From the sequence record NC_048054.1: a DNA stretch of 64,000 nucleotides. One strand, 5' to 3'. The notes under the pieces are model-generated. The model worked only from the letters and a program-made list of their open reading frames with translations. It was not told the origin of the DNA and made no database searches. Of this stretch, positions 21,677 to 58,212 are shown in pieces. Each line of letters opens with the position of its first letter. Position 1 is the first letter of the stretch. Position numbers and translations under genes: made by a program.

Positions 21677-24600
21677 TTAGACTGATTTGTTTTTCGACAT
21701 GGTCAGTTTCAACTTGTCGAGCGCCTTAGTGACCTTCGTAATGTTCGTGATGTTGTAGCCTGCTTTCACGATCTTATTGATACGTGCTTTCGCAGTAGCC
21801 ACGTTCTTCACGAAGCCAATCCACATACCAGGCGACAGGTCGAACGTACCGAACTTACGAGTGTTCGGGATTTTCGTACCGACGAAGCGTTTCATCTGTG
21901 GGTTGGTTTTCAGGTCGAACATGATGCGCAGTCGGTCTTCCATGATCATCGGGTATGCCTTGACGTGTTTCTTATCCGAGGCAGACTTGTGTTTCACGAG
22001 GAAGAACTTCGGCAGTTGCTCCTGACCTTTCGTAGCCAGTTTGACGTTGAAGCCCATACGCGGCGTAGACTCGTCGAAGAAGTCCAGTACGAACTCCAGA
22101 CGTTTCTCGGACGGCTTGTCGAATGCCAGTTTCTTCTTAACCTCGATGAAGTCAAGCATGGCCTCGAAGTCCGAGTAGTACACGCAGTCGTAATAAACGT
22201 AATCACCGAACTCCACGAAGTCGAATGCCTTGAGCGCTTCTGAATCAGGGTCAGTCGCATCTGCGTACAGCGCAACAAATCCGTTATACACTGTAGGCGT
22301 CAGAGCCATCGCCATGTCAGCACCAGTAGCTTCGGCAACAGCCTTAGCGCCAGGCTTCATGCGCGTCGTGGTGTTAGCCAGAGGAGGCAAGTCTGCAACC
22401 TTACGACGGCGAACTTTCTTGGCAGCTTCTTCAACACCTTCGTTGATTGGCTTACCAGTCTTTTTGTTCTCCACACGCTTGGCCACGCGAGCAGCTTTAC
22501 GCTCCTGCGCTTCGACTTTCTTCTCTGTCTGCTTGGTGTCAGCCGTCTGCGTTTCATCAGCAACAGTGTCTTCGACTTCAACACGGTTAGCTTCGGCATT
22601 AGCACGTTTGCGATCTTTCTCGTTCGCCCACGCTTTACGAGCCTCGAAGAAACGTTTCAGATCGTTCTTGTCTACCTTAGTAGCAATGTGAACTTTCGTC
22701 GCAGGAACTGCAACGGTTTCACCAGAGCCAGCCAGACGAACACGAACGGTACTGATAGGACTGTCACCGCGCAGCTTACCATCGACCATACGAACAGTCA
22801 CAGACACGACAACGCCGTTACCGAACTCAGTTACGACAGGTGCACGATTCAGAGAATCTTTCAGCCCTTCGCCGCTGGTGAAGTTACGGTTACGCGCCCA
22901 ATCCAGAAGACGTTCAGTGCCCCAGCCATTACGGTCTGGAATCTTCTGGTTCGCAACGAGCGGAGTCTGCTCCATCACACGGAAGTCGGTCAGAGCTGGC
23001 GTTGACGGCAGTGCTTGCATTGCAGCAATCGTCGTCTTACGCATCTCCTGGAACTCCTGCGATTCGATATCGTTAAGATCACGTTTCGCGAGGAAGTACG
23101 GAGCGAAGTCTTCCATTGTGTTGTTGTCGATCAGCAGCTTCGCACTCATTTTGATAGGGTCCAGTTTATACTGGTCGAGTGCTTCGTAGCGCTGGTTGCC
23201 TTTCTCGTCGAAGCGAGTCTTCTCCAGGGTCTTCCACATCAGACGTGCAACCTTACCAACTTCTAAGGTCTTGTTCGTCATAACCCAGTCGATGAACACA
23301 ACTTCACGAGCCATGTCGCCTGGCTTACCGTTCTCGTCCAACTTCGCAGCAGCAACGTCAGGACGGAAGATACGCGCAGTAGACTGGTCGTAAGTACCTG
23401 GTGACCACGGAGTATCGCAGCGAATAATACGGCTACCCATCTGCATGTTGTGGCCTTCGGAGATCGCTTGTTCGTTCGCAATCAGAATCTGAACGTTCGG
23501 GTCAGTTTTGAATGCGTCGAGGTTAGCGTCTTTGTTCTGGCCGAGCTTACCAACTTCACCGTGATACACCACAGCAACTTTCTTATAGTTGGCTGGCAGT
23601 GCATTGTAGATGGCGTTAGCAGCACGAACATAACGAGTGAAGACAATCAGCTTGCCTTGCACCTCAGGCTTCCAGTAATCTGGATCGTCTGGAGGTGGAA
23701 CCATTGAAGGCGGCAGCGCTTGACGCTTGAACTCTTCGGACTGCTTACGCGCCAGATACTTCTGACCGTTGTAGACAGCAATGTCCAGTTCACGCGGTTC
23801 TACGCCAGGCTTCCATTCGAAGATCTGCTGTTCACCAATCAGAGGATCACGCTCAGGCTGAACTTCGAAGTGCTTGCGAATACGGTCGATGATAGTCAAC
23901 ACTTTCGCAGAAACGAAGTTGGTAACGCCTGCGGCTTCAAACGTCAGACGGGCAACGTCATCACCCATAGGGTCAGTCAGCATCATTTCCATACGCTGGA
24001 AGTACATGTTCAGGTCAGCGTTACTCGCTAACAATGCACCCAGGTCATCGCCGTCTTCGATTTCGTCTTCGTCGATATCCGATGTGGAATCACCATCTCC
24101 GCCACCAGCTTCGTCGTCATCGTCATCGCCACCGCCACTTTTCTTCTTGGCGTTCTTGGCCGCTTCGTCCAGCTTCTCCAGAACTTCCGCGTACATTGCG
24201 TTGTACACTTCCTGGTGCAGCGCAGAGTTAGGCACTGACGGGTCATCGATCTCAACCTGAATAAAGGTATCAATCGGGTTCGGCAGCATGAACGCCCAAT
24301 GCTTACGCTTGAACGAGATGAACGCTGTATGGTTAGCCATACGTGAGTGCGCACGACGAATCATTTCGATATCATCTTTCGCGCCGTCATATGCAACGTC
24401 CAGTGAATCACCGAACATAGCAGGAGTCATCAATGCAGCCTGACCAACGATATCACGCACACGGTCAGTCACCAGCGTACCAGTAGCGATACGAGCATAG
24501 CGAACAGACGGCGCAGTGAAGACCGCTTTGGTGTTGAAGTGAACCTGAGAGCCAGCCTGACCACCAGAGAAGTTCTTCACTTTGTGAGACTCGTCGAGCA

Positions 24601-27526
24601 ACACATAGCTGAACTTGAAGCGGTTGACGAACTCAACAGCACCACGCACACGAACACGCACACCGCCGATATCAACGTTGAACGTACCAGTCTGCAAATA
24701 GCTCAGGCCGACGATAAAGATTGTGTTACGAGGTGACTGAGAGATCACATCGTACATACGTTCTTCGCCCCACGTGTTCACAGTGTCAGCAGTGATTGGT
24801 ACTGCGTTCCAGCCGTCAACGATTTTGTGGAGGTCGTCACACCAGTTCGCTACGAGGTTAGACGGACAGATGATCAGAGGACGAATGCCTTCTTCACCTA
24901 AATCGTCCAGCTCTTTGATAGTAGCCGCGATATCAGTCAGACCGATAATCGTTTTACCACCACCAGGCGCGATAAAGATTGTTGCAAAGCGCGGACGACG
25001 ACGCAGAGTTTTGTGCGCTTCGACCTGATGCGGCAGTAATGCTGCACCATCTTTCAGACCAGGAATACGAATATCATCAATGGTGATACCGCTGTCTGGT
25101 TTCAGACGTTCGATCTCAGTTTCAGCCGATTCGAAAATCTCAAGAGACTTAGGAATCACGTCGCTGTACATGGTAGCGAACGGCAGAATGATTTGTTGCA
25201 GACGGCCAGAACCTGGAGCCTGATCAGATTCAATCAGAGAGCTAAACAGTTTCTTACGGTCAGCGCGAACCAGAGACTGTGCCATTTCACGATACAACGC
25301 ACCACCGAAGTAGTTGTTGAGGCGTGCCATGTCAGACAGTTTGGACTTCTCACCCATTACGAAGTAGTGAGTGTGTGACGGCAGAGATTCGGTAGCAGCC
25401 GTAATGCTTCCCATCTCATTGAGAGAGGTTGCAATCAGGTTTGAACCACGCAGACCAGCAGCATCGTTCAGCACACGAATCATAATGCGCAGCATAGTCA
25501 GAGCAGGACGCTCGTTTGACATATCAGGCACTGAGAAGTCGTTGGCAATCAGGTTCTCATACAGGCCGTTGTCCATCGGGCTTTCGGACAGCGCAGCGTT
25601 CTCTGCATCCATGCCGATAGCTTTACGCGCATTCTCCACCAGCGTTTTCAGGTCAGGAACTTGTTTGTTCTTGAGCATGAACTCGTAGGTCTGGCAAGTC
25701 TGTGCGATGATGTTCAGCAACTCAGGCAGGTTAGAACCTTCGGTGGAGTTATACTTGATAGTGGATTCGCTCACACTCTCAATCAACTTACCGCTACCAG
25801 ATTCAACCTTAGCAGCTTCGATCATCGTGTCATACGACGGACGATACAGAGCCATGCCACCAGACGCCTGATTGTGATAGATGTTACCAATCACGTTCGA
25901 GGCAGAACGGAAGTTCGGTGCTTCACCTGGCTCTGCGAAGTCGTAGCCTAAAGCATCAGCAACGTCCAGAGAGTTTGGAGACTTCATACCGACAGTACGA
26001 GTTTCGTTAACTGCCAGACCGCCACCGTTTGAGGTGTTTACGATCAGAGAGAAGTCAGGGTCTATACCGATACACACATCACTGAAACGAGACAACGATT
26101 TGGCTTTCGCCTGTACGTCGCGGTCGAAATCCAGATTACCGTTCTGGATAGCGAACATGTTGGTGCGCAGGGTGTCGTGCTCAGTAGACAGCGGAACGCC
26201 TTTCTCGAACAGGTCTTCCAGCACACCGTTCAATGAGGTTTCGTAAGTCTTCACCATGTCGATATCAATATCTTCACGGCGAGGCAGCACCGCCATTGTA
26301 CCGTTCGGCATGATAGTCATACCGTGCTCGTCAGCCACAACATCATTCACCACGTAGCCGAACTTCTCACGCAGCTTTTTCAGTTCAGGCAGCGTGGTAG
26401 CGGAGGTAACGTAACGAGGAATACGTGCAGCACGAGTGATACCAGTACGAGTAGAACCAGCAACACGGAAGTAGTAGCTCGCCCAGCCCTGGAACCAACG
26501 ATACAGACACATGGTTTGCGTGTCAGCACCCTGAGAGATGTACTCAACCATCTCTTTCTCGAAGTTAACGATCAGGCCGCCTTCGACGCGAACGTCGGTT
26601 GCCAGCGCTACTTCGTTGAACTCGACAGGAGTGTCGTTGCTGATCTTCATCGCCTGAATCTTGCGATCAATCATCTGCTTACCTGGGATGGAGCGAATGC
26701 CGATAGTCATGAAATCACCAAGACCATCAACCACAGCTTTATCCAGATTGCGGAACAGATCGATATCAATCGTGTTCATCAGCGGATGGATAGAACGCAG
26801 AGCAGCGTTATACACAGACCAGTCTTTATCCAGAGGGATACGAACCATCTTGGTGTCGAACGCATTGCTGTTACTGCGGTCAACGCCGAAGATATCTTTG
26901 TAGATGGTCTTCGCCACACGAATAGCAGACTGCGCTACTTCGGAGCTGTAGGTACGCAGGTTGGCGCTTTCGAAGTTCGCGTCTTTATCAACACGGGGAC
27001 GGTCGCTACCCTGATTGTTCAGAACGTTGAAGTTACCGTTCGAGGCCAGCGGGCTAGTCGGGCACGGAGTACCAGACATGATGATATCTTTACCGCCAGG
27101 GAAACGCGTACTGTTTTCGATGATCGCACCAGATGATGCAGACAGGTGTTCGGCCAGAGCAGTTTTAATCTCACGGCTCAGCTTGTCACCGTTCAACATC
27201 ATATTGATTTTCAGCGAGGACGCTTCGATGTTGTTCTTGATACGCTTAACGAAGTCATCAGGAGAGACTTCGATCATATCTTCGAACTCTGCACCGTTAA
27301 TAACGATGTAGTTGATCAGGTCGAATGCCGCATAGATGCGAGCAACGGTAGAAGCCGTGAACACTGCGAGAGTTTCGTAGTTACGGCGCGACTTCCCTGT
27401 GGCGTACATCTTCGCCGTTTTGGCGTCGAACTCGGGCGGCAACGGACGAACAGAAAGTGCCTGATTGAACGTATCGGCAATTTGCTGTGTCGCGGTTGCT
27501 GACCTACTAATAATCTGATTCATCAT
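21677..27526 (-). CDS. Giant SNF2-family (SF2) helicase/translocase, 1949 aa
   Basis: APGGGKT, LIICPSNLVANW, LLDESHK, IATGT, LIVFTRY, SEGHNMQ and DQSTARIFR motifs; ~830-aa uncharacterised N-terminal region. Confidence 0.9.
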   Translation of the reverse strand: MMNQIISRSATATQQIADTFNQALSVRPLPPEFDAKTAKMYATGKSRRNYETLAVFTASTVARIYAAFDLINYIVINGAEFEDMIEVSPDDFVKRIKNNIEASSLKINMMLNGDKLSREIKTALAEHLSASSGAIIENSTRFPGGKDIIMSGTPCPTSPLASNGNFNVLNNQGSDRPRVDKDANFESANLRTYSSEVAQSAIRVAKTIYKDIFGVDRSNSNAFDTKMVRIPLDKDWSVYNAALRSIHPLMNTIDIDLFRNLDKAVVDGLGDFMTIGIRSIPGKQMIDRKIQAMKISNDTPVEFNEVALATDVRVEGGLIVNFEKEMVEYISQGADTQTMCLYRWFQGWASYYFRVAGSTRTGITRAARIPRYVTSATTLPELKKLREKFGYVVNDVVADEHGMTIMPNGTMAVLPRREDIDIDMVKTYETSLNGVLEDLFEKGVPLSTEHDTLRTNMFAIQNGNLDFDRDVQAKAKSLSRFSDVCIGIDPDFSLIVNTSNGGGLAVNETRTVGMKSPNSLDVADALGYDFAEPGEAPNFRSASNVIGNIYHNQASGGMALYRPSYDTMIEAAKVESGSGKLIESVSESTIKYNSTEGSNLPELLNIIAQTCQTYEFMLKNKQVPDLKTLVENARKAIGMDAENAALSESPMDNGLYENLIANDFSVPDMSNERPALTMLRIMIRVLNDAAGLRGSNLIATSLNEMGSITAATESLPSHTHYFVMGEKSKLSDMARLNNYFGGALYREMAQSLVRADRKKLFSSLIESDQAPGSGRLQQIILPFATMYSDVIPKSLEIFESAETEIERLKPDSGITIDDIRIPGLKDGAALLPHQVEAHKTLRRRPRFATIFIAPGGGKTIIGLTDIAATIKELDDLGEEGIRPLIICPSNLVANWCDDLHKIVDGWNAVPITADTVNTWGEERMYDVISQSPRNTIFIVGLSYLQTGTFNVDIGGVRVRVRGAVEFVNRFKFSYVLLDESHKVKNFSGGQAGSQVHFNTKAVFTAPSVRYARIATGTLVTDRVRDIVGQAALMTPAMFGDSLDVAYDGAKDDIEMIRRAHSRMANHTAFISFKRKHWAFMLPNPIDTFIQVEIDDPSVPNSALHQEVYNAMYAEVLEKLDEAAKNAKKKSGGGDDDDDEAGGGDGDSTSDIDEDEIEDGDDLGALLASNADLNMYFQRMEMMLTDPMGDDVARLTFEAAGVTNFVSAKVLTIIDRIRKHFEVQPERDPLIGEQQIFEWKPGVEPRELDIAVYNGQKYLARKQSEEFKRQALPPSMVPPPDDPDYWKPEVQGKLIVFTRYVRAANAIYNALPANYKKVAVVYHGEVGKLGQNKDANLDAFKTDPNVQILIANEQAISEGHNMQMGSRIIRCDTPWSPGTYDQSTARIFRPDVAAAKLDENGKPGDMAREVVFIDWVMTNKTLEVGKVARLMWKTLEKTRFDEKGNQRYEALDQYKLDPIKMSAKLLIDNNTMEDFAPYFLAKRDLNDIESQEFQEMRKTTIAAMQALPSTPALTDFRVMEQTPLVANQKIPDRNGWGTERLLDWARNRNFTSGEGLKDSLNRAPVVTEFGNGVVVSVTVRMVDGKLRGDSPISTVRVRLAGSGETVAVPATKVHIATKVDKNDLKRFFEARKAWANEKDRKRANAEANRVEVEDTVADETQTADTKQTEKKVEAQERKAARVAKRVENKKTGKPINEGVEEAAKKVRRRKVADLPPLANTTTRMKPGAKAVAEATGADMAMALTPTVYNGFVALYADATDPDSEALKAFDFVEFGDYVYYDCVYYSDFEAMLDFIEVKKKLAFDKPSEKRLEFVLDFFDESTPRMGFNVKLATKGQEQLPKFFLVKHKSASDKKHVKAYPMIMEDRLRIMFDLKTNPQMKRFVGTKIPNTRKFGTFDLSPGMWIGFVKNVATAKARINKIVKAGYNITNITKVTKALDKLKLTMSKNKSV

Positions 27527-38250: not shown

Positions 38251-38331
38251 AGATGCTCCTTACATTTTGATGTGGTTTTCGACTAAAGTAAAAATGGGCC
38301 CACACCTTTCGATGTAAGCCCAAGATCACGA

Positions 38332-38841
38332 TCATTCCTTAATCATTTTGACACGCGTGTGGTCGAAGATACCGAACGTAGGCACATCATGATGCTCACC
38401 TTCGTTACCTTTGATCGAGTCGTACCCAGCAAGTTTGAGTATCTTGCTGATCTCGGTATACTCGTCCCACCACATATAGACTCGCTTATACTGCGATGCA
38501 GGTATAAGTTTGTTCAGCGCGTCTAACCTTTTAACGAGAGTCATCGCCTCATCTTTGCCAACCAGATGTAACTGGAAGGCTTCCATGATAAGTTGTTTCA
38601 CTCGTCTATGAATCTCAGCGAACTTTACTTCCGTCCACAGAGAACGGAACTTCAAGCTGGCATACCGGCCTGGGTCCGCATGAAATTTGTAGAGGCGCCC
38701 ACCTTCCGCATACTTCTCAGCATACGCACGATCTGGAGTTACCCAAGTCATGTGTTGCTTCTTCGCATGATCATCAGACCAATCTTCTGCAAGACCGCGA
38801 TAGTAGATTGTGGGCGCACTCAAACTGACAAAGATCTGCAA
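38332..38841 (-). CDS. ADP-ribosyltransferase-like protein with N-terminal MQIFVSLS peptide, 169 aa
   Basis: YYRG (strand 1), TWVTPDRAYAEKYA (S/T-x-T plus helix), GYDSI.GNE and FGIFD..RVK, the layout of phage/PolyVal-type ART domains; TTG start adjoining the upstream stop. Confidence 0.6.
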   Translation of the reverse strand: MQIFVSLSAPTIYYRGLAEDWSDDHAKKQHMTWVTPDRAYAEKYAEGGRLYKFHADPGRYASLKFRSLWTEVKFAEIHRRVKQLIMEAFQLHLVGKDEAMTLVKRLDALNKLIPASQYKRVYMWWDEYTEISKILKLAGYDSIKGNEGEHHDVPTFGIFDHTRVKMIKE

Positions 38842-39753
38842 TTAATGTTTGTCCGTATCGTGGATATCAGCTTCACCGAGAGCACGCTGGAACGAAGCAG
38901 GCGTTAGGCCGTACTTAGCCATGTCTGACTTCTTGACAGTGATCTTCTTACCGCTCTTATTGGTGAATACGCCTTTGCCGTTTTTAACGGAACCAGACCA
39001 GCCAGCTTTGGCAGTAATAGATTTACCGCCATTGAGTTCTTTCATCATGCGTTTAACCATGCGCGTGTCTTTGTCCCACTGCTTTGATTGATCTTGCAAG
39101 TGTTGACGCGCTGCATCGTTTTTCTGACCGATGGTTTTGTACTGAGTACCACCAGTAGTGCCTTTAGTTTTCTTCGCAGGCGCTTTCTCGGTCTTCGCAG
39201 CTTTTGTAGTGGTCTTGCTGCCGAGAGCTTCAAACTTAGAAGCTGCCAGGAATTTAGGCTTGATGTAACCCTTCTGACCTTTAACTACCAAAGAGTCAGT
39301 CTGTGCCGCTTTAACGGTACGCGCAGATCGACCAGGCTCACTAGTCAATGAAATGTCACTTACTTTCAGCGGAGAAGACAATGCACTCAGACCAGCAGCC
39401 TTCATAGCGGCAGTACCTTCGCGCAGTAGCTGTTTGGCGGTCTTCACGTCAGCAGAGGCTTTAGTCTTCATTGCCTTGACACGCTGGCGTAGTTTGGTTT
39501 TACGCGCAGGGTTTTCTTCACGCGGAACACGCACAGCCGCAATAGTGTTTGCTTCAATACGGTTCTTCAACGCAGACAATGCCAGCTTCTGAGCTTTACG
39601 CGCATTGGAGATGCACTTCGATACAGCAGGTTTATGTTCGCTGCTAATAACAAGCGCAGTCGCACCACCGACTTTGGCCATTTTGTAGCCCGGCTTCTTC
39701 GCTGCCGACTCAGACAGCAGAGAATCCGCAATATTGATTTTGATAAGTGCCAT
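38842..39753 (-). CDS. Basic Lys/Ala-rich protein, putative internal virion DNA-binding protein, 303 aa
   Basis: AAGGA RBS; N-terminal LLSESAA motif; high K/A content. Confidence 0.7.
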   Translation of the reverse strand: MALIKINIADSLLSESAAKKPGYKMAKVGGATALVISSEHKPAVSKCISNARKAQKLALSALKNRIEANTIAAVRVPREENPARKTKLRQRVKAMKTKASADVKTAKQLLREGTAAMKAAGLSALSSPLKVSDISLTSEPGRSARTVKAAQTDSLVVKGQKGYIKPKFLAASKFEALGSKTTTKAAKTEKAPAKKTKGTTGGTQYKTIGQKNDAARQHLQDQSKQWDKDTRMVKRMMKELNGGKSITAKAGWSGSVKNGKGVFTNKSGKKITVKKSDMAKYGLTPASFQRALGEADIHDTDKH

Positions 39754-39771
39754 TTGATTGTTCCTTATACC

Positions 39772-40371
39772 TTAGGGTCGCCCAGGTACGTCAAAGTTTT
39801 TTCCCGCCGAGTAATCACCCAGCGCCTGATAAAGAGAGTCACGCAGCATACGCTGAATGATATCCGAGTTGTGCGCAGAGGCATCTTTGAATGCAACCTC
39901 GATCGCTTCTGTTCTCGGATTCAGTACAGCATAACGCAGCGGGCAGATCACTTGCGCTTTACACCACGCGTCGATTTTGATCTGCAAATCAGGCGTGATT
40001 GGAATGCGGAAGTCTGCGAGTTGGAACACAACGCTCTGGATAGGAGGCGGCGATGATAGCGATATGAACTTACCGTTCGGGTTCAATCGCTCCATAGCGT
40101 TTGCGGCTTCATAGATCGTTTGATAACCTTCACTAACGGTCGTGATGTTAGTCAACTTGAAGCTATGCGTTGTCAATCCTTTACGAATCAACTTGGCGAT
40201 ATTGAGTTCATAATCACCAGAGTCATCGCGCATGAAAGTGACGAACGCGTAGAAGGCGAAACCATCCTCTTCGCGTAAAAGTCTGTGGTCTAATACGCGA
40301 AAGCCCACGACACTTTGCAGTGCCTGGGCTGTGATTTGCGTCGCCTTAGACAGGGAGACGTAGATTTCCAT
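39772..40371 (-). CDS. Hypothetical protein with N-terminal MEIYVSLS peptide, 199 aa
   Basis: TAATG coupling with the upstream gene. Confidence 0.75.
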   Translation of the reverse strand: MEIYVSLSKATQITAQALQSVVGFRVLDHRLLREEDGFAFYAFVTFMRDDSGDYELNIAKLIRKGLTTHSFKLTNITTVSEGYQTIYEAANAMERLNPNGKFISLSSPPPIQSVVFQLADFRIPITPDLQIKIDAWCKAQVICPLRYAVLNPRTEAIEVAFKDASAHNSDIIQRMLRDSLYQALGDYSAGKNFDVPGRP

Positions 40372-40706
40372 TAACGCAGACGGGCCAGCGCCTTTTTAGC
40401 AGCGGCCAGAGTTGGCTGAATGTCGCCTTCATCGTCGAACTCGCCTTCGAAGCGAATGTCGAGGCCAGTCACGTTAAAGCCTTCATCTTCGTCTTTGGTG
40501 ATAATACCGAAACGAGCGGTGTCACCAGTAGCGCTGATGAAACGCAGATCGAGGATATCGTTAGGACCAGACAGGTCAGACGGCATACCGTCGTCGATAA
40601 TCTCGAACAGCGCTTTCTTGTCCAGGCCTTTGAAGAACGCAGACAGAGCGGCGGCAGCAGATTCGGATTTAACAGCTTCTTTCAGATTCAGTTTGATCAG
40701 GGACAT
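40371..40706 (-). CDS. Hypothetical protein with N-terminal KSESAA motif, 111 aa
   Basis: GGAG RBS; co-oriented. Confidence 0.7.
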   Translation of the reverse strand: MSLIKLNLKEAVKSESAAAALSAFFKGLDKKALFEIIDDGMPSDLSGPNDILDLRFISATGDTARFGIITKDEDEGFNVTGLDIRFEGEFDDEGDIQPTLAAAKKALARLR

Positions 40707-40708
40707 GG

Positions 40709-41281
40709 TTAGTTTACTCCAACTTGTTTAGTGATTGTGATAACACGCTGGTACCAACCATAAATGTTATCTTCCTGGGTTTCATCTGCCTTAGCGATGT
40801 TTTTCAACTTCGCAATACGGCAGCCGTTGTAGGCATAAGCCAATACTTTGATATCGCGCACTTTGCAGTACGCGTCCAGCGCAGCGATAGTCTTAGGACC
40901 AATATTCGCAGCAGGTGCAAAGTCTGGATAGAGCTTGCCTCGCTGATTCAGAATATTTAACTGGTCCTGTAGCTCCGCAATTGCGGCTGGTGGGCCTGAG
41001 TTAACTGCGTAGTCGAATACCCACAGCGCCAGCTCCTGACTATACTTCGCAAGCTGATCGCATTTGCAGAAGTCCCAGAAGTTAGCACTGTAGATCGCAT
41101 ACGCAATCTCATAAGGCAGGTCTTGCATAGCGCCTTTGTAGCCATAGGCGCGAGCATTCTTTTCCGTGACACCCCAACGTGTAGGACCGCCACGGTCAGC
41201 AGAGCGGTTAGTGTATTTCTCGCCACCTTCACGATCAATAACTTCCGCAATAGCTTTCTTTCGAAACGTCAAAGCGTCCAT
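40709..41281 (-). CDS. Glycoside hydrolase family 108 lysozyme with C-terminal PG-binding domain (endolysin or virion lysin), 190 aa
   Basis: IDREGG.Y.N...DRGGPTRWGVT catalytic motif, FDYAVNSG, IGPKT, YGWYQR. Confidence 0.92.
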   Translation of the reverse strand: MDALTFRKKAIAEVIDREGGEKYTNRSADRGGPTRWGVTEKNARAYGYKGAMQDLPYEIAYAIYSANFWDFCKCDQLAKYSQELALWVFDYAVNSGPPAAIAELQDQLNILNQRGKLYPDFAPAANIGPKTIAALDAYCKVRDIKVLAYAYNGCRIAKLKNIAKADETQEDNIYGWYQRVITITKQVGVN

Positions 41282-41306
41282 AATACAGGTCCTCTTTTAG
41301 ACGAAT

Positions 41307-41314
41307 TGAAATTA
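41307..41314 (-). promoter_or_regulatory. TAATTTYA-class promoter motif
   Basis: TAATTTCA 26 nt upstream of the lysozyme start. Confidence 0.55.
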
Positions 41315-41317
41315 TCG

Positions 41318-42172
41318 TTAGATGGCTAAGTTCGATTGTTTGAATCGCATCTTAGGACGAGTACCGGGATCTGACGTGACTGCATCAAAGTCATTCGCAT
41401 CGAGCTTGCAGAATGCACGAAGGACTGAGCTATAGAAAAACGCCTTATTCAATATCGGTGCTTCGTCTACACCAGACTGTGTTTGAGCAAATTGTCCATT
41501 GTAGTTAGCACCGGCAGAAATACCAGGCGTACCGTTAGTACCTGTAGCATAGAAAGATGTTGGTAAACCCATCATCGTACATGCGTAGGCAGGAGTTTCG
41601 TTCGCCGTGACAGTTGTGTACGTACAAATGCCAGTAGCCCCACCAGCACTACAGGTACCAGTTGCAGTTACGCCCGTGTCTCTGACGTATCGACTGCCAA
41701 TGAATCCCGTAGCGATCTGACCGTACGGGCAGTTACCATCATGCAGATTCATTGGTGGCATCGTTATCGGCTGACCAGCAATCATCCCTGTGGTCAGAAA
41801 TACCGTTGTATTGCCGGAAGTATTTAGAAACGAGTAAGACTGCGAGGCAGCGATACTACAGTTACCACTAAGACCTTTTGCCGGGTCCTGTTGAACAATA
41901 TCATAGGAGTTATCGAGTGTGATCGAACTCGGCTGTTGGTACTTCAAACAGGTGAAGTGATATTTGTTGGACTTGCGCCCTCTGATTGGATTGAGATACC
42001 CATTGAAGCCCAAAACAGCACGGGCTTTTCGAGCAAGGACGTTTGCCTTGGTCATATCCGTCAGCGTAGAGAAGTCAGAGTCTTCCCGACTGTCGTATAG
42101 GAATACGTTCGGGTTCGTGGGTGATGGTCCACCCAACCCGAAAAAAGATGATATGTACTGCATGGTTTCCAC
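41318..42172 (-). CDS. Gly/Thr/Cys-rich putative fibre/virion protein, paralogue of 36580..37335, 284 aa
   Basis: GAGG RBS; shared N- and C-terminal motifs with 36580..37335. Confidence 0.6.
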   Translation of the reverse strand: METMQYISSFFGLGGPSPTNPNVFLYDSREDSDFSTLTDMTKANVLARKARAVLGFNGYLNPIRGRKSNKYHFTCLKYQQPSSITLDNSYDIVQQDPAKGLSGNCSIAASQSYSFLNTSGNTTVFLTTGMIAGQPITMPPMNLHDGNCPYGQIATGFIGSRYVRDTGVTATGTCSAGGATGICTYTTVTANETPAYACTMMGLPTSFYATGTNGTPGISAGANYNGQFAQTQSGVDEAPILNKAFFYSSVLRAFCKLDANDFDAVTSDPGTRPKMRFKQSNLAI

Positions 42173-42209
42173 CTCAAGTAGATTAAGGATAATGTGCTAC
42201 GCCTTAGGC

Positions 42210-42217
42210 TAAAATTA
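42210..42217 (-). promoter_or_regulatory. TAATTTYA-class promoter motif
   Basis: TAATTTTA 38 nt upstream of 42172, right after a terminator. Confidence 0.55.
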
Positions 42218-42231
42218 GCTGCAAGATCGAC

Positions 42232-42251
42232 AAAAGGGGCCGAAGCCCCTT
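42232..42251 (-). terminator. Rho-independent terminator, cUUCGg loop
   Basis: AAGGGGC-TTCG-GCCCCTTTT. Confidence 0.8.
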
Positions 42252-42591
42252 AGAATGTCCAACGTGTTGCCCAAGCGATTAAGCCTGAGATAATACCGAT
42301 GTGCGCCAGATAACCGAACTGCAATACATGGCCTCGGACATAATGTTTCAGTCCACCAGCGTATGCACCATCATACATGGCAGCGATTATCATGAAGGAC
42401 ATGATGTAGGTGAACACATGCCACCGAGTCATCTCCATCGCTTCGTTGCAGAACACTATCAGAAATAATGCAACGGCCATGATGTACGCAGTGCGCTTCA
42501 TCTCAGTCAGATTGATACCAAGCACGACAGGTCGCATGGCGAACGCCGCTAGTATCGACACCAACATCAACGCCTGATAGTCGGCTGACAT
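42250..42591 (-). CDS. Small integral membrane protein (3-4 TM), holin candidate, 113 aa
   Basis: Several uninterrupted hydrophobic stretches; about 1 kb from the GH108 gene. Function unproven. Confidence 0.5.
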   Translation of the reverse strand: MSADYQALMLVSILAAFAMRPVVLGINLTEMKRTAYIMAVALFLIVFCNEAMEMTRWHVFTYIMSFMIIAAMYDGAYAGGLKHYVRGHVLQFGYLAHIGIISGLIAWATRWTF

Positions 42592-42884
42592 GCTTCTTCC
42601 ACCTCTTCCGTGCTTATCGGTTTGTTGCGACGCATATCAAGTGCGAGTTGTGCCTTGCGACCTATGCGAGCCATAGACTCCAGATCTTCATCCGAATAGG
42701 CGCTCATGCTGTCTTTGACAACAGAGAGTTCTCGGAGGTGGCTTGGTGCTAGTTCGTAATCACCAGCCGAACCAAACATCGCAGCAGACAGGCCTGGGAT
42801 ATTTACGTTAGCGATGCTTGGCACGTCATCTCTGACTTTCACAAGCAGCTTACCGCTTTTACTTACATCGTGTGGAATTGCCAT
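42567..42884 (-). CDS. Hypothetical protein (~105 aa)
   Basis: Start moved to ATG 42884 (AAGG RBS, MAIPHD). Confidence 0.6.
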   Translation of the reverse strand: MAIPHDVSKSGKLLVKVRDDVPSIANVNIPGLSAAMFGSAGDYELAPSHLRELSVVKDSMSAYSDEDLESMARIGRKAQLALDMRRNKPISTEEVEEACQPTIRR

Positions 42885-42885
42885 A

Positions 42886-43599
42886 CTACACACCTTGATT
42901 AGCGAGATAAGTATCGGTGATGTTTGAGGTCTTCTCCACGTTACCGCGAATGTAACCAATCTCAAACACCTGCACGTTATGTTTGACAACCGCCTCACCA
43001 ACTGTCTCACATGCACCGCTATTCAGATCGAGGAAAGCCTGACACAAACGTTCGGCAACAGGCTTGGCCAGAATCTTCATCAGCGTGTGCTTCTGCATCG
43101 CAGTCAGCTTGATAGGCAGTGCGTCGATCTCACGTTCGATGTTCTTACGTCCACCGTGATAAATCCAACGACAGATGGTTGCAGTCAAAGGCTTCTGGTG
43201 AGTCTTCGACGGCAAGGTGTAGATGTAAGTCATCAGGCGATAGAACAGGCTACCGTCGATTGCGCGTTTCTTCAAATCGTCCAGATACTTACCAACAGGA
43301 CTGAGCTTGCCTTTCTGCGGTTGCATCTCGTCGAGTTTAAGATCAACGTCAAGGCCATAGCGCTTCAACGTTTCAGGATGACCGAACACGAAGACAATAT
43401 GGTCAGGCATATCACGAATAGCAACCGCGTTTCGGCTATATTCTTTCTCGCCGATAACGAACAGGTACTTACGATATTTCTTGGCAGGGTCAAGTACACC
43501 ACCAAGTGGAACGAAGGTCACACGATCAGCATGACCTTTCTTTCTCAGCCAGCCCAGCACTTGCTCTGGGCTTTGGCGTGTTACCGCAATTACAGGCAT
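42886..43599 (-). CDS. Hypothetical protein, 237 aa
   Basis: GGAG RBS; co-oriented. Confidence 0.75.
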   Translation of the reverse strand: MPVIAVTRQSPEQVLGWLRKKGHADRVTFVPLGGVLDPAKKYRKYLFVIGEKEYSRNAVAIRDMPDHIVFVFGHPETLKRYGLDVDLKLDEMQPQKGKLSPVGKYLDDLKKRAIDGSLFYRLMTYIYTLPSKTHQKPLTATICRWIYHGGRKNIEREIDALPIKLTAMQKHTLMKILAKPVAERLCQAFLDLNSGACETVGEAVVKHNVQVFEIGYIRGNVEKTSNITDTYLANQGV

Positions 43600-43601
43600 T
43601 G

Positions 43602-43925
43602 TTACTCCACTGTGTTGAGAGCTTGTGCCGTGTACTCACGCAGAGTACGCTCAATGTTCTTTGCCAGAGTTGGGTGGCAGATAAGCTGGTGGTCTTTCAT
43701 GTACACACGCAGCGAAGGACGCATCACCTTACGCACTTGAGGATAGAGGCCGAAGATTTTATGCAGAGGTGTCTTGTAGTAAAACTCCTCATGCTCGTCC
43801 ATGCAGTTGATGTTTGCCACAACTTCGTACTTGGCAAAGATGGCTGGATTGCGATTGATGTACGCTGGTTCAATCGGCACACTGCCTTTCTCGTGGTCGC
43901 TACTGAACTTACCGAAGATCATCAC
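43602..43925 (-). CDS. Hypothetical protein, 107 aa
   Basis: Overlaps the sbcC stop by 4 nt. Confidence 0.7.
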   Translation of the reverse strand: MMIFGKFSSDHEKGSVPIEPAYINRNPAIFAKYEVVANINCMDEHEEFYYKTPLHKIFGLYPQVRKVMRPSLRVYMKDHQLICHPTLAKNIERTLREYTAQALNTVE

Positions 43926-46252
43926 ATCACCTTACGCGTTAACTTAGACACACCACCTTGCTTGGTGATAGTCCATTGATTGTCAGAGAAGTGCTCAACG
44001 TCCAGAGGAGTAATCCAGTAAACGTTAGGAATGATTTGCTTGAGAATCGGGAGGAAGTTCTTCACGATATGATCGCGTGTCGCGTCACTACAGGAGTTCT
44101 CAGGTTCATCCAGCACAATAAAGTTTGTACGGCGATTAGCAGGAATGAATGGCATGATCGCAACAGCAAACAGCAGACGGAAACAGTTTGTCTCTGCACC
44201 ACTCATGATTGCAATATCAGTCGTCTTCTTCGACACCAGACGAGTAACGGTTGCACCAATACCCTGCTTGGTAGTGAACAGTTCGAAGTGCATAGGCTCA
44301 GGGAACACCAGACCAGAGTATTCGTTCAGCTTCTTCTCAATCTGTTTGATACGGCCTTCGACCGCTTTCAGTTTGAGCGCGTTATTGCTGTATGCCTTAT
44401 ACAGGACCTCGAATACTTTGCGCTTATCAATCAGAGGTTGCAGGTCTGCGAGTTTACTACGGAGTTCACGCAACGTTTCTTCGTAGTGTTCGTGTTCCTG
44501 AATACGCATCTGAATGTTTTGCGCTTTGCGCTCCTTCTTCTCGATATCGGTAATCAGCTTCTCAACTTCGGCGCTTACCTTTTTGTATCGTCCATCGAGC
44601 AGGTAGAACGGATCTTCTGGTTCACCTACAGCTTTGAGTGCAGCACGAAGGTCTTTCAGAATCTCAAGGTCCTTGATTCGGTTCTTGATTGTCTTACGGG
44701 CTTTCTTAGGCTGCTTCACCGCTTTAGGTTTCTTGAGCGCGTCACGCTTGGCCACCAGCTTCTCATACTTCTTGGCTGTTTCGAATTGTTCTTCGATTGC
44801 GTCCAGTGCTGCGCCTACGGCTTTGAGTTTCTTCTCAAGGTCCTTGCGCTTGTGCTTAGGCTTCTTAACTTTCTCGGCTTTCAACTCTGTTAGTTGATCG
44901 TTGAGTTTGTGGTAGTCGATAGCCTCGATACACTCGTCAATGATTGCCTGAGCTTTCGTTGCAGCGCGAGCCATAGCTTTCAGGTCAACGTCTTGGCCGC
45001 AGGTAGGACAAGAGTTACCGTCGTGATCATGTTCTTCAAAAGCACGATACGCCTGAACTATCGCTTTGGCCTCTGCTCTGGAATCTTGTGCCTCTTCCTG
45101 AGTTCGCTTAGGAGCCTTGAGCTTAGACAGCTTTTTACTGAGCTTGTCCAGGGCTTCTCGCCATTCGTCGTATTCTTCTTGTTGTTCATCGACTTTCTCC
45201 AGCAACGCTTCGAGGCTCTCTTCCTCTTTAACTAAGCGTCCATGTTCTTTGCGCAGCTTTTTGTTATCAAGGTCGGTGACGTCCCCAAGCGCTTTGATTT
45301 TCTTTTTAACGTCGGCGAGTTCCTGTTGGTATTCTTCCAACGCTTCCACGTAATCGTCGTAACGGTCGTGTTCGATCAATTCACCACGCAACGCATTCAG
45401 TTCACCTTTCAGGTCAGAGCACTCAATGCCTAACGTGTCGAGTTGATGCTTGAGCTTCTCGTACTTCCGCGCGTTCGAGCGCTGGGTACCGAGTTCTATC
45501 AATTGCTCAGACAGTTCGTTACGTCTGGCTTTCATCTTATCTGACTGCTTGATGATTTTAGCCAGCGTGTTCTTTTCTTCGGCATGAATCGACAGCGCGT
45601 TCTGCTTACGCTGTGTAACGTCCAGCATATCAGCCAGACCTTTAGATTCTGTCTCGGCATCTTTCGCCAAGTCCAGTTTCTTCTTCAACGCCATACGAAT
45701 GTTGTCAAACACGTCGAGGTTGAATAACGAGGTCAGGTACTTGAGGCGATCAGCAGGCTGGGCACGTTGGAACGGATGCGGTATCTGCGATTGAATGTAG
45801 GCATAACTGTAGAACTCGTCTTTCGATAGCGGCCAATGCTTTGCAATCCATGAACGCGCTACGTCCTGACGTCCAACCTTCTGGTCCTCACCGTTGTAGT
45901 AAACAGTGTAGCTCTTGGCTGTTTGCTCGATACGAACAATACCGCCTAACGGAGATTCCCAGGACAGATCGATAACGCTGCCCTTACTGAGCATGTTACC
46001 CTTGTCTTTCTTTTTCAGAGCGAGAGGGTCAGCTTCGTAGAGCAGCGTAGGTATTGCACCGAACAGCAGACTTTTGCCTACGCCGTTCGTATTGTCTTTA
46101 ACGTTCGGACTATCGAGGTTCTTACCACAAATGGTTGCGAAGCCTTCACTGTCCAGTGTGTCGATATCAAGCTCTTTGTACACGCCAACATCGCGGAGAT
46201 GAATCTCTTTCAATCCAATGCCGTGGTTCTGTTTCTGCTTCGCTTTGCCCAT
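43922..46252 (-). CDS. sbcC: SbcC/Rad50 (gp46-like) SMC ATPase, 776 aa
   Basis: Walker A GKN...NGVGKS, long coiled coil with CPTCG zinc hook, MSGAE signature, IVLDEP Walker B. Confidence 0.93.
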   Translation of the reverse strand: MGKAKQKQNHGIGLKEIHLRDVGVYKELDIDTLDSEGFATICGKNLDSPNVKDNTNGVGKSLLFGAIPTLLYEADPLALKKKDKGNMLSKGSVIDLSWESPLGGIVRIEQTAKSYTVYYNGEDQKVGRQDVARSWIAKHWPLSKDEFYSYAYIQSQIPHPFQRAQPADRLKYLTSLFNLDVFDNIRMALKKKLDLAKDAETESKGLADMLDVTQRKQNALSIHAEEKNTLAKIIKQSDKMKARRNELSEQLIELGTQRSNARKYEKLKHQLDTLGIECSDLKGELNALRGELIEHDRYDDYVEALEEYQQELADVKKKIKALGDVTDLDNKKLRKEHGRLVKEEESLEALLEKVDEQQEEYDEWREALDKLSKKLSKLKAPKRTQEEAQDSRAEAKAIVQAYRAFEEHDHDGNSCPTCGQDVDLKAMARAATKAQAIIDECIEAIDYHKLNDQLTELKAEKVKKPKHKRKDLEKKLKAVGAALDAIEEQFETAKKYEKLVAKRDALKKPKAVKQPKKARKTIKNRIKDLEILKDLRAALKAVGEPEDPFYLLDGRYKKVSAEVEKLITDIEKKERKAQNIQMRIQEHEHYEETLRELRSKLADLQPLIDKRKVFEVLYKAYSNNALKLKAVEGRIKQIEKKLNEYSGLVFPEPMHFELFTTKQGIGATVTRLVSKKTTDIAIMSGAETNCFRLLFAVAIMPFIPANRRTNFIVLDEPENSCSDATRDHIVKNFLPILKQIIPNVYWITPLDVEHFSDNQWTITKQGGVSKLTRKVM

Positions 46253-46452
46253 TAGACGTACTCGACTGTTTCTTCCTGGATAAGACCTTTACCGTGAATC
46301 TGTTCGAATACTTCGATTTCATCAGCGGTGTACGGCTCGGCAGATTCTGCGATCACATCATACGCATATGATTCGTCGCGGGTATCGCTTGCGATTGGTT
46401 TTAAAACACGCCAGAGTGGCAGAGCGATCGGTTCACGTTGGATAGCAGGCAT
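46252..46452 (-). CDS. Hypothetical protein, 66 aa
   Basis: TAATG coupling at both ends. Confidence 0.65.
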   Translation of the reverse strand: MPAIQREPIALPLWRVLKPIASDTRDESYAYDVIAESAEPYTADEIEVFEQIHGKGLIQEETVEYV

Positions 46453-46664
46453 TAGTGGAATACTCCCTGACGTTCAACCCACAGGTCAGCAGCACGATAC
46501 ACCTGACGCAGCTCATTCAGTTTTTCTTCTGGTACAGGAGTAGCAGACGAGAAGATGCACTGTGGTGTCTTCTCCTCTTTGCCTGTTACAGGATTGATAT
46601 CGGTATCGTGACGCATTACGTTCCAGCGGCTGTTCGAGCCACGGATATTGATAGTCTGGTTCAT
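46452..46664 (-). CDS. Hypothetical protein, 70 aa
   Basis: Coupled to the downstream gene; promoter motif upstream. Confidence 0.65.
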   Translation of the reverse strand: MNQTINIRGSNSRWNVMRHDTDINPVTGKEEKTPQCIFSSATPVPEEKLNELRQVYRAADLWVERQGVFH

Positions 46665-46700
46665 GGTTAAAGCCCAAGTATTGGTGTTAATGATACTCGT

Positions 46701-46709
46701 TATTTACAG
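46701..46709 (-). promoter_or_regulatory. CTGTAAATA-class promoter motif
   Basis: Exact motif 37 nt upstream of 46664, heading the sbcC operon. Confidence 0.6.
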
Positions 46710-46743
46710 TTTTGGTCAGTATAGACAAAAAGAAGGGCCACCG

Positions 46744-47265
46744 TTAGGCAGCCCCTGCGAATACTTTGCGCTTGCCGTTATCAATGTAATGATCCGCATA
46801 GAACGGACCACTAACACCTTTCAGGCCGAGTTTATTTTTGAGGCTGTTCTTACGAGCAAACACATATTTCAGATGCTCATTGCGTTTTCTTTTACGCTCA
46901 GGAGACCAGCCCTTCATTTCTTTTTCGATCTTACGAACGGATGCGTCAAGATCAACAAGGTTTTGATAATCATTGGTCGCTTTACTGCACGAGGAAAATA
47001 CTTTACGCACCCCGTTCTCCAGGTAATGGTCTTCATAGAACGGACCATCAACATTTTCAAGACCAATACGCCGACGTAGCTGTCTGTGCAAGCGCTTAGA
47101 CCATACCAGTTCATCATCTATCAGATGAATAACAGCAGGCATTGCTTCACGTTGGTCCATCATCAGACCACGAATCTTCGCGTCAATCTTACAAAGTTCG
47201 GCGTAGTCCTGTTCTGGAGTTGGTACGTTGCACACAGGCTTAGAAAGATCTACGGTGAGTTCCAT
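46744..47265 (-). CDS. Hypothetical protein with internal duplication, 173 aa
   Basis: Two copies of a helix followed by GL..V.GPFY.DHY..NG.RKVF; N-terminus MELTVDLSK. Confidence 0.75.
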   Translation of the reverse strand: MELTVDLSKPVCNVPTPEQDYAELCKIDAKIRGLMMDQREAMPAVIHLIDDELVWSKRLHRQLRRRIGLENVDGPFYEDHYLENGVRKVFSSCSKATNDYQNLVDLDASVRKIEKEMKGWSPERKRKRNEHLKYVFARKNSLKNKLGLKGVSGPFYADHYIDNGKRKVFAGAA

Positions 47266-47714
47266 CAGTATCTCCGTGGCTTCTTAGGCTTTTTAGGCCT
47301 TGTGGATTTAGGACGCTTGATACGCTGTAACGCTTTACGCGCTTCGGCGATCTGACCAGACAGTGCTGCGCGTTGTTTCTTCGTCGCGTCAGTATCTTGG
47401 TCTGTGCCTTTCAGCTTCTCAAGACGGTTCCATTCTTTCACCAAACGATCAACAACAGCAGCACGGCTCACTCGTTGTTGGTTGGTGCGAACGATATCCT
47501 GCTGGGTCTTCACCGAGCGTTGAGTGTCTTGCACTTTCTTACGTGCTGCCTCAACACCTTTCGTGTCACCTTCGGATTGTTTGTCGTTCAGTTCTTTACG
47601 CGCCGCATTACTTCTGCGCTGCGCACCTTTGAGATCGTCACGCGAGTTTTCTAAACTCACTTTGGTATCTTCGAGTGGGCTAGAGCGCACACTCAAACTG
47701 ACCATGATTTCCAT
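47265..47714 (-). CDS. Basic coiled-coil protein with N-terminal MEIMVSLS peptide (~149 aa)
   Basis: Start moved to ATG 47714 (GGAG RBS; the longer track start would run through a terminator). Confidence 0.75.
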   Translation of the reverse strand: MEIMVSLSVRSSPLEDTKVSLENSRDDLKGAQRRSNAARKELNDKQSEGDTKGVEAARKKVQDTQRSVKTQQDIVRTNQQRVSRAAVVDRLVKEWNRLEKLKGTDQDTDATKKQRAALSGQIAEARKALQRIKRPKSTRPKKPKKPRRY

Positions 47715-47731
47715 AACGGCTCCAGAAATGA

Positions 47732-47757
47732 AAAAGGGCAGCCGAAGCCACCCTTTT
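47732..47757 (-). terminator. Rho-independent terminator, repeated cUUCGg family
   Basis: AAAAGGGTGGC-TTCG-GCTGCCCTTTTT. Confidence 0.8.
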
Positions 47758-47844
47758 GTAGATGGCGCGCTATGCACCCGACTGTTAAGTCTACTACGAT
47801 TATTTTACCTCGCAGTAGTCAGCGAGGAGATTGGGATCACCTCC

Positions 47845-48381
47845 TCATGCTGATTGAAGGTCGAGAATTTCCTCGTCTTCGATATCAGCGGCAGACCACG
47901 AACGAATCACGGACGCATTACCGCGGTTGCCTGTCAGCATCATCTTAACAGATGGCTTGGCATTGCGCTCTGCGTAGTGGTCGATAAGAGCTTTCTCATT
48001 ACCGAACCACATAATGGAGTGACCACCTTTAGGGCAGATCAAGAATTGGGCAGGACGCTGCGGTACGTTGAGCGTCATGTACAGATCACCGACGCCGTTA
48101 GGACCTAACATAGGCATCGGCTTCATGATTTGGGCAAAGTCATTAGCATCTTTAAGACGCTTATCGCCTAACAACCAGAGCGCACCTTCCTCACCCTCAC
48201 GCACAGCAGATAGTGTGCCCTTACGAGTAGTGATAGAGCCGAAGGTGTCTTGATCGAAGCGGGCCAGACCGAAAATGAGAGATGCGAGCTTTTTCAGGTC
48301 AGGGGTCGTGCATGGGCTATCAATCTGTGCCATGCCCTCAGACCCAAGTGTAATCTTCGAGAGTGATACAAAGATTTCCAT
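47845..48381 (-). CDS. Hypothetical protein with N-terminal MEIFVSLS peptide, 178 aa
   Basis: Purine-rich RBS; late motif upstream. Confidence 0.75.
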   Translation of the reverse strand: MEIFVSLSKITLGSEGMAQIDSPCTTPDLKKLASLIFGLARFDQDTFGSITTRKGTLSAVREGEEGALWLLGDKRLKDANDFAQIMKPMPMLGPNGVGDLYMTLNVPQRPAQFLICPKGGHSIMWFGNEKALIDHYAERNAKPSVKMMLTGNRGNASVIRSWSAADIEDEEILDLQSA

Positions 48382-48414: not shown

Positions 48415-48422
48415 TAAAATTA
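48415..48422 (-). promoter_or_regulatory. TAATTTYA-class promoter motif
   Basis: TAATTTTA 34 nt upstream of 48381. Confidence 0.55.
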
Positions 48423-56392: not shown

Positions 56393-57052
56393 TCATTTTT
56401 TCTGTGAAACGCGTTTTCCGAGCTTAACACCGATTTGCGTCAGTATTCGCTTGACCGTTTCACCGTCGTGTTCAGCCATTGCAGCAGCTAAACGCTCGCC
56501 CTGTTCACGCGATAGCTCAGGCATGACCATTTTAAGCATCTGCGAGCGCATTTTAGCTGATTTAGACTTGCCTTTCGACACCGATACGCCTTCGTTAGCT
56601 GTGAGCGCACTGCTAATCGCTTTCTGCACACGACGATCACCGAAGATATCGCCGAATACGTCACCGAACAGGTCTTTGAACGATAGACCACCGCTCATAA
56701 TGTCGTTTTTCGTGAAACGAACAGGCTGTCCGAGCGCATTCACTTTATTGCAATGCACAGATTCAACCTGATTCGTGGTACGTCCACCAGCACGGAAGTT
56801 CTCGTCAGGGCGTGACGCTTTACCCTCTGCGCCCGGCTTTGTGTTGCCGTTGCGCAAATCAGGGTTACCTTCGACAGCTTTATCAGGGTCGAACATGTCG
56901 TCGGCTGTTTCGCTCTGATTCGCGTCAAACGGAATCTTACCTGTCAGCTTGTTGGGATCTGGCCAGCTATCTGGAATGTCAGAAGCAGGCTGTGGTTTAT
57001 TCGTCATATCCCCATTTGCTTCACCGCTCAAGCTGATCTTAATACGTGCCAT
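56393..57052 (-). CDS. Hypothetical protein with N-terminal KISLSG motif, 219 aa
   Basis: AGGAG RBS; low-complexity N-terminal half. Confidence 0.75.
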   Translation of the reverse strand: MARIKISLSGEANGDMTNKPQPASDIPDSWPDPNKLTGKIPFDANQSETADDMFDPDKAVEGNPDLRNGNTKPGAEGKASRPDENFRAGGRTTNQVESVHCNKVNALGQPVRFTKNDIMSGGLSFKDLFGDVFGDIFGDRRVQKAISSALTANEGVSVSKGKSKSAKMRSQMLKMVMPELSREQGERLAAAMAEHDGETVKRILTQIGVKLGKRVSQKK

Positions 57053-58204: not shown

Positions 58205-58212
58205 TGAAATTA
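58205..58212 (-). promoter_or_regulatory. TAATTTYA-class promoter motif
   Basis: TAATTTCA 22 nt upstream of 58183. Confidence 0.55.

Follow-up and report, generated by a model that had tools for sequence, protein, structure and literature searches.

What do proteins that have nothing in common except their first eight residues share in function? This question is raised by a stretch of 64,000 nucleotides (the window) from the genome of Dickeya phage vB_DsoM_AD1 (AD1; NC_048054.1, 261,658 bp, genus Alexandravirus), in which several minus-strand genes encode proteins of otherwise unrelated sequence that begin almost identically. The window corresponds to positions 124001-188000 of the record, so that a record coordinate is the window coordinate plus 124000; its part 38000-48500 matches the AD1 sequence with 100% identity. 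AD1 has been assigned to the jumbo-phage group of PaBG, Lu11 and Erwinia and Dickeya phages, which was named the 'Lupandier group' in one paper (PMC7412058), and is not a phiKZ-like phage. The shared peptide, called here the tag, is probably a portable, eight-residue signal by which accessory proteins are drawn into the prohead as it assembles; they would then travel in the virion and be delivered along with the DNA. We hold this reading with moderate confidence.

A short peptide common to unrelated proteins

Five unrelated AD1 proteins open with M[EQ]I.VSLS, namely gp189, gp191, gp203 and gp204 in the window and gp227 outside it (Table 1). The first four, together with the variant start of gp202, had been noticed in the original prediction, and all five of the N-termini it quoted are present on the minus strand as listed in the table. 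A six-frame translation of the window contains four matches to the pattern [EQ]I.VSLS, where 0.026 are expected, and that of the whole genome contains five, where 0.12 are expected. All five matches lie directly 3' of a start codon, and for gene starts the expectation is 4.5e-5; a chance origin is thus excluded. BLASTP among the five proteins and gp202 found no similarity past the first 8-19 residues. In a set of 32 tags drawn from six genomes, both AGY and TCN encode Ser6 and Ser8, and all six leucine codons are used for Leu7, so that the tag is conserved, and selected, as a protein and not as a DNA repeat, as had been proposed. The consensus of these 32 tags is M-[E/K/Q]-I-x-[V/I]-S-L-S, with A, K or S usually found at position 9. 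We found no description of such a tag in the literature searched.

The tag recurs on many different genes across four related phage genera, both on orthologs of the AD1 genes and on non-orthologous genes, in Yersinia phage fHe-Yen9-02 (Yen9-02), Erwinia phages Yoloswag and Y3 and Dickeya phage JA11. Per 40-kb region, 4-9 genes carry the tag in each genus; they belong to different families, and the set of them varies among genera. The tag is kept even in orthologs whose bodies are only ~33-40% identical. In gp204 it is invariant or almost so in 14 orthologs (overall identity 69-96%), and the orthologs of gp203 retain it as MEIVISLSM (Yen9-02), MEILISLSQ (Yoloswag), MQVLISLSK (JA11) and MKILISLSA (Y3). 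Eight homologs of gp189 have it as well, with variants that include MKIVISLST and MQIRISLSA. Between gp204 and gp203, where AD1 has nothing, JA11 has a tagged protein of 225 aa and Y3 an unrelated tagged protein of 256 aa. In the JA11 protein (JA11 gp190), a domain that is otherwise internal to giant phage proteins (phrog_21376) stands alone behind a tag.

A natural version of gp204 that lacks the tag also exists. Yoloswag gp201, the gp204 ortholog (locus L008, 20007), begins MSGLIVKN; its first methionine falls within the tag of the Yersinia-phage ortholog (MRIFVSMS-GLTVQNK), right at the end of that tag. In an AlphaFold2 (AF2) model of gp204, with a mean predicted local distance difference test (pLDDT) score of 66 and a core at 72-89, residues 1-7 are unstructured (pLDDT <50) and the fold starts at residue 10. 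The variable sets of tagged genes, the Yoloswag ortholog and these unstructured residues together indicate that the tag is a separable add-on, and judging from the model it is dispensable for the fold. A fold search with the gp204 model against the PDB gave no match with E <0.1. Relatives of gp204 form four clusters only among 1.8 billion representatives, and the family is confined to the phage group of AD1.

Other forms of the N-terminus were found beside the main one. A looser sister form, M-x-L-I-K-[I/L]-N-[I/L], gives gp190 and gp192 a second kind of N-terminus; the orthologs of gp192 start with MTAIKLNLGKNVKSESS in Yen9-02 and MTVIKLNLKDAVPSESS in Y3. The start of gp215 and those of its orthologs, MKLKINLSE (Yoloswag), MKISISLND (Yen9-02) and MRVMISLNS (Y3), bridge the main and the sister form. 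The giant SNF2-type helicase gp175 has a short form, seen also in its orthologs as MQIFSTSA (JA11), MLISTSK (Yoloswag and Yen9-02) and MGSLFTLNSLSAA (PaBG). As a side observation, a metagenomic relative (L014, 14513-16072) encodes a tagged protein of 519 aa (MIKIWISLSK) with a PcfJ domain and leucine-rich repeats.

Probable connections with the head and a proposed model for cargo loading

Four lines of indirect evidence connect the tag with the phage head. The first is gene position in distant relatives, for which we used 54 metagenomic and IMG/VR loci with a major capsid protein (MCP) of only 46-54% identity. Tagged genes occur there within 10 kb of the MCP gene, and the loci hold 20 strict ATG-start tags on the MCP strand and 0 on the opposite strand. 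In locus L095, the scaffold and MCP genes are immediately preceded by six consecutive tagged genes; in L014 and L056 the tagged genes come after the protease and MCP genes.

The second line of evidence comes from virions. Purified PaBG virions, analysed by sodium dodecyl sulfate polyacrylamide gel electrophoresis and matrix-assisted laser desorption/ionization, yielded 14 bands that included the 221-kDa helicase gp202 (band 1) and the 35-kDa gp83 (PMC7412058, Table 1). Both proteins have N-termini of the tag family: PaBG gp202 is the gp175 ortholog that starts with MGSLFTLNSLSAA, and gp83 starts with MLIKINLLEAV. The proposal that the SNF2 protein is virion cargo is thereby borne out for PaBG. 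The LIKINL start of AD1 gp190 recurs in PaBG gp83, which has no homology in AD1 beyond its first ten residues; these match gp192. For gp190 and another PaBG virion protein, gp191 (O152_gp295), no homology was found.

The third line is the serine motif itself, whose tie to head assembly had been suggested before and was here strengthened by gp140. With an extended low-complexity region rich in Asp and Glu, pairs of Cys-x-x-Cys and ~21 S-x-S sites, this protein looks like a scaffold or core protein rather than the 'ATPase' of its annotation. S.S occurs in it 21 times against 7.5 expected (z 5.5) and in its JA11 ortholog 28 times against 11.5; S.S[AGSKTRN] occurs 17 times against 3.1 (z 8.0) and in JA11 23 times against 5.0 (z 8.6). 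The excess is specific to this spacing, as SS, S..S and S...S in gp140 are at expectation, and [SAG].E is depleted (12 against 19.5, z -2.1; z -3.1 in JA11_129). About 15 of the gp140 sites keep their position in the JA11 ortholog (51% identity), with a variable middle residue. Serines inside S-x-S are conserved between the two in 80% of cases, as against 47% for other serines (p 0.005). Similar motifs are found in the N-terminus of the protease gp142 (SIRSES-FD in AD1, SVESKS-FD in JA11), in the portal (AIRSESS and FVSQSAG) and in the MCP, where residues 32-41, L-S-x-S-T-G-E-x-N-A, are conserved family-wide and HSHS-G is found at 65-69 in near relatives. The protease itself matches phrog_18299 'head maturation protease' with E 1.7e-126 and is named 'prohead core protein protease' in GenBank; its relatives include proteins of mycobacteriophage cluster C and phage G gp19, and it has no sequence match in the PDB.

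The fourth line is transcription, as expression appears to be late for several of the tagged genes. The motif TAATTTYA has 14 sites in the AD1 genome, 11 of them in intergenic DNA at a distance of 12-48 nt upstream from minus-strand genes. It is found upstream of the tail sheath genes gp134 and gp157, the scaffold-like gp140, the endolysin gene gp193, gp204 and gp216, and behaves like a candidate late promoter element. With these motifs and strong terminators, gp204, gp193-gp189 and gp216>gp215 look like late units.

With this in mind, one may propose how the tag would work. Its alternating hydrophobic residues would form a short beta-strand, and this strand would dock on a component of the prohead, for which the best candidate is the acidic, scaffold-like gp140, with its LVSLS-R and KVSLS-K segments. 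After packaging, the prohead protease gp142 would clip the tag, cutting after the second serine. Since S-x-S with a small or basic residue after it, the motif of gp140, of the gp142 N-terminus, of the portal and of the MCP, also closes the tag, the protease probably removes the tag. If tagged proteins do enter the virion, their cleavage after the second serine would be the somewhat likelier outcome, judging from the motif. A broader form of this model, to which we give only tentative credence, would assign to a large clade of environmental jumbo phages, with AD1, Alexandra, Y3, Yoloswag, JA11, the PaBG group and many metagenomic relatives, one universal beta-strand cargo tag and a protease whose specificity switched from Glu at the position before the cut to Ser-x-Ser.

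To our knowledge, experiments have defined capsid-targeting signals in only a few phages, chiefly T4 and, for DarB, P1. The capsid-targeting sequence (CTS) of T4, as Mullaney and Black (1996) are cited in two later papers, is an N-terminal peptide of ~10 residues on internal proteins; according to the same papers it ends in a consensus site of the prohead protease, and its cargo is packed into the head and injected (PMC9024508, PMC10052503). In AD1, too, a short N-terminal peptide is common to proteins with unrelated bodies that vary among lineages and are often basic. The AD1 tag differs in that its sequence is unrelated, it ends in Ser-x-Ser instead of Glu and it is predicted to form a beta-strand; also, genes of the AD1 type are scattered or in the head module, whereas those of T4 are in one internal protein locus. 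Targeting and cleavage in AD1 are predictions from sequence. In phiKZ, which the original prediction also invoked, and in SPN3US, the prohead protease cleaves propeptides of head and ejection proteins at A/S/G-X-E (PMC10052503). AD1 resembles these jumbo phages in having a three-residue motif repeated in abundant inner proteins, and many of their head proteins have N-terminal propeptides. Those propeptides, however, are long and mutually dissimilar, and their motif ends in Glu, whereas gp140 is depleted in [SAG].E. In addition, AD1 belongs to another phage group, which uses a sigma factor and has no annotated virion RNA polymerase. As it shares neither the sequence nor the Glu before the cut, the tag is by sequence not a member of the T4 or phiKZ families; by analogy, it is most likely a signal comparable to the T4 CTS but new in its serine-based sequence.

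Phage P1 carries in its head DarB, a helicase-domain protein of ~220-250 kDa whose first <=30 residues direct packaging, and the Dar proteins have no common N-terminal consensus (PMC9024508). The giant SNF2 helicases gp175 of AD1 and gp202 of PaBG, the latter present in virions, recall DarB; there is no sequence similarity, and in phages of the AD1 type a consensus is common to many proteins. A further likeness is to the cargo-loading peptides of encapsulins, which are short and conserved, occur on unrelated cargo and target it to the interior of a shell with the HK97 fold. Encapsulin peptides are usually C-terminal and retained, whereas the AD1 tag is N-terminal.

Evidence against the model and alternative readings

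Several observations weigh against cargo loading followed by cleavage. The virion evidence comes from PaBG and concerns the short and sister forms of the tag; for AD1, Y3, Alexandra, Yoloswag, JA11 and fHe-Yen9-02, no mass spectrometry of virions was found in the literature searched. A distance of 55-85 kb separates the tagged genes of AD1 from its head module. The S.S excess is absent from the PaBG scaffold and weak in that of L014. Beside S-x-S in the MCP, the most invariant residues are G37-E38, and as the characterised giant-phage proteases cut after Glu, a cut of the MCP after E38 is a real alternative. We also considered whether the tag co-varies with the L-S-x-S-T segment of the MCP, and rejected this: ISLS tags persist in a relative that has ALDQKT in its MCP, so that the tag and this stretch of the MCP are not necessarily one signal.

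Of two wider claims made earlier, one found little support and the other held in part. A broader S-x-S motif had been seen near other N-termini, and the instances named are present (KISLSG at 57052, LLSESAA at 39753, VKSESAA at 40706, VVSVSAA at 21072, SSISAS at 34491 and IISRSA at 27523/27526). Genome-wide, N-terminal S-x-S is more frequent than elsewhere (8.6 against 5.1 per 1000, p 3.5e-6), statistics that are approximate because the strand-block-aware gene caller chose the most upstream starts. Within the first 30 residues, though, S-x-S is enriched 1.68-fold and SS and S..S rise nearly as much (1.47- and 1.45-fold), and thus the enrichment mostly reflects Ser-rich composition. A scan of the proteome found N-terminal S-x-S equally in early-type plus-strand genes, and we draw no support for a code from it. 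The second claim, that most such genes are in operons headed by TAATTTYA, holds for the gp204, gp192-gp189 and gp215 units. It does not hold for gp203/gp202, which have no promoter motif of their own, or for gp227, which lies in an early-type block and has no TAATTTYA upstream.

Among the alternatives, the one that survives best is that the tag is a docking strand that is never cut, that is, a permanent cargo-loading peptide like those of encapsulins, with the S-x-S sites of the scaffold due to cleavage elsewhere, to modification or to strand pairing. The residues that precede S-x-S (M-E/K-I-x-V/I) are conserved as strongly as the tag serines in the 32 tags, PaBG gp83 has a tag with no S-x-S after it and runs near its full predicted size, and the characterised giant-phage prohead proteases, those of T4 and SPN3US (A-X-E), are Glu-specific (PMC10052503). 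Modification of serines is conceivable as well, since a glycosyltransferase gene is conserved in the head module. On the other hand, S-x-S with a small or basic residue is common to the tag end and to the ~15 conserved scaffold sites, and the start of the gp204 ortholog in Yoloswag coincides with the predicted cut. The gp173 family, moreover, keeps S-x-S-A precisely at the junction of leader and body: the L095 homolog has another leader (MKINLNIRSESAT) and retains S-x-S-A directly before the conserved KKQ.ANAEILFGK. We consider an uncleaved tag unlikely.

It is also rather improbable that the tag serves a partner outside the capsid, such as a chaperone, an unfoldase or degradation system (N-motifs of the ClpXP type, or the Zn-peptidase gp210), or mutual assembly of the tagged proteins in the infected cell. 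Such a role would suit the position of the AD1 genes outside the head module, one of them in an early-type block, as well as the separate conserved peptidase, gp210, encoded nearby, and the range of the tagged proteins from very acidic to very basic. It is at odds with the tagged genes that lie within the head modules of distant relatives, with the two PaBG virion proteins that have tag-family N-termini and with the identity of the tag end and the motif enriched in gp140. Finally, a feature of the mRNA or of translation initiation, or a neutral leftover of recombination joints between accessory genes with a functionless peptide, might be imagined from the lack of a Shine-Dalgarno sequence at gp189 and gp191, which start by coupling to the upstream stop, and from the cassette-like units bounded by terminators, but this is very improbable and is largely excluded by the codon data, as every one of the six Ser and six Leu codons occurs at the conserved sites and no RNA sequence is thus conserved, and the peptide is retained across genera with bodies down to ~33% identity and in the metagenomic relatives.

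Gene features, annotation and significance

The features discussed are collected in Table 1. The annotated start of gp191 in RefSeq is 40233; the tagged start upstream of it is retained in the Yen9-02 ortholog (MRISISLSAIQMSAQALTKIVGFRVL) and in Y3_195 (MKIFVSLAATQMNAQALTKVVGFRVL), and the gene start should, from this comparison, be moved to 40371.

Table 1. Features of the AD1 genome considered here, in window coordinates except where marked as record coordinates
Feature	Coordinates	Strand	Description
gp204	47845..48381	-	178 aa; MEIFVSLSK; tag encoded at 48358-48381
gp203	47265..47714	-	149 aa, pI 10.7; MEIMVSLSV; coiled-coil-like, C-terminal tail basic; GGAG Shine-Dalgarno sequence upstream
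gp202	46744..47265	-	173 aa, pI 9.3; variant tag MELTVDLSK; start and gp203 stop overlap by one base
gp191, long form	39772..40371	-	199 aa; MEIYVSLSK; start overlaps gp192 stop by one base
gp189	38332..38841	-	169 aa; MQIFVSLSA; TTG start abuts gp190 stop
gp227	record 189568-190032		beyond the window; 154 residues; fifth M[EQ]I.VSLS match
gp190	38842..39753	-	303 aa, pI 10.4, Lys-rich; sister form MALIKINIADSLLSESAA
gp192	40371..40706	-	111 aa, acidic; sister form MSLIKLNLKEAVKSESAA
gp215	56393..57052	-	219 aa; MARIKISLSG, tag longer by one residue
gp175, giant SNF2-type helicase	21677..27523	-	1948 aa; short tag form MNQIISRSA; C-terminal SNF2-like matches
gp173	20095..21072	-	325 aa; leader MHEITLPSGTVVSVSAA, then conserved body
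gp140	record 105682-107676		between protease and MCP genes; annotated 'ATPase'
gp193, endolysin (annotation)	40709..41281	-	first gene of gp193>gp192>gp191>gp190>gp189
Late-promoter-like motif TAATTTTA	48415..48422	-	41 nt upstream of gp204
Motif TAATTTCA	41307..41314	-	33 nt upstream of gp193
Motif TAATTTCA	58205-58212		heads gp216>gp215 unit, gp215 second gene
Terminator hairpin	47732..47757	-	between gp204 and gp203
Terminator hairpin	46733..46756	-	end of gp202
Terminator hairpin	38295..38322	-	after gp189; 12-bp stem

The label of ADP-ribosyltransferase that had been given to gp189 was not upheld. No family or structure match was found for this protein in PHROGs, NCBIfam, PADLOC, precomputed Pfam or the PDB (by sequence and profile), and the putative E-x-E is not conserved at its second Glu. 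The AF2 model of gp189 (pLDDT 52) is too poor to judge the fold or the packing of the tag. As for other tagged proteins, gp202 contains an internal duplication (…DGPFYEDHYLENGVRKVF… and …SGPFYADHYIDNGKRKVF…) and gave a weak, sub-threshold MvaT-like match. With a pI of 4.1 and 50 Asp and Glu among its 154 residues, gp227 has an acidity compatible with a DNA-mimic type of protein.

Some neighbouring genes deserve mention. Directly downstream of the prohead protease gene, gp141 (record 107753-108880) has a zinc-protease-like HELAH motif; the PaBG gene in the same slot, unrelated to gp141, is the one for virion protein gp83. A GT2 glycosyltransferase gene (AD1 record 110818-112026) is conserved within the head modules of JA11, PaBG and L014, and glycosylation of the virion could be another use of Ser-rich motifs. 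A second upstream motif, CTGTAAATA, which may belong to a different promoter class, occurs at ~49800 (clamp loader gene gp205), ~46690 (gp201) and ~37860 (SLOG-like gp187). The clamp loader gp205 (window 48487-49776, minus strand) has Lys runs at both ends, from long A-rich tracts. For gp214 (window 54373-55989, minus strand), annotated with 350 aa, the open reading frame extends to a GTG at 55989 and would encode 538 aa; its orthologs in Y3, Yoloswag and Yen9-02 have 531-552 aa, and the apparent unannotated gap of 970 bp is therefore probably coding.

The annotation of AD1 gains from this analysis a corrected start for gp191, a scaffold-like assignment for gp140 in place of 'ATPase' and a candidate late promoter motif. 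If the model of cargo loading is true, the repertoire of packaged and injected proteins would become predictable from sequence for a whole clade of jumbo phages, and such proteins are likely to be anti-defence and host-takeover factors. These phages would also possess a prohead protease of new specificity, and foreign proteins could be loaded into large capsids by the addition of eight residues.

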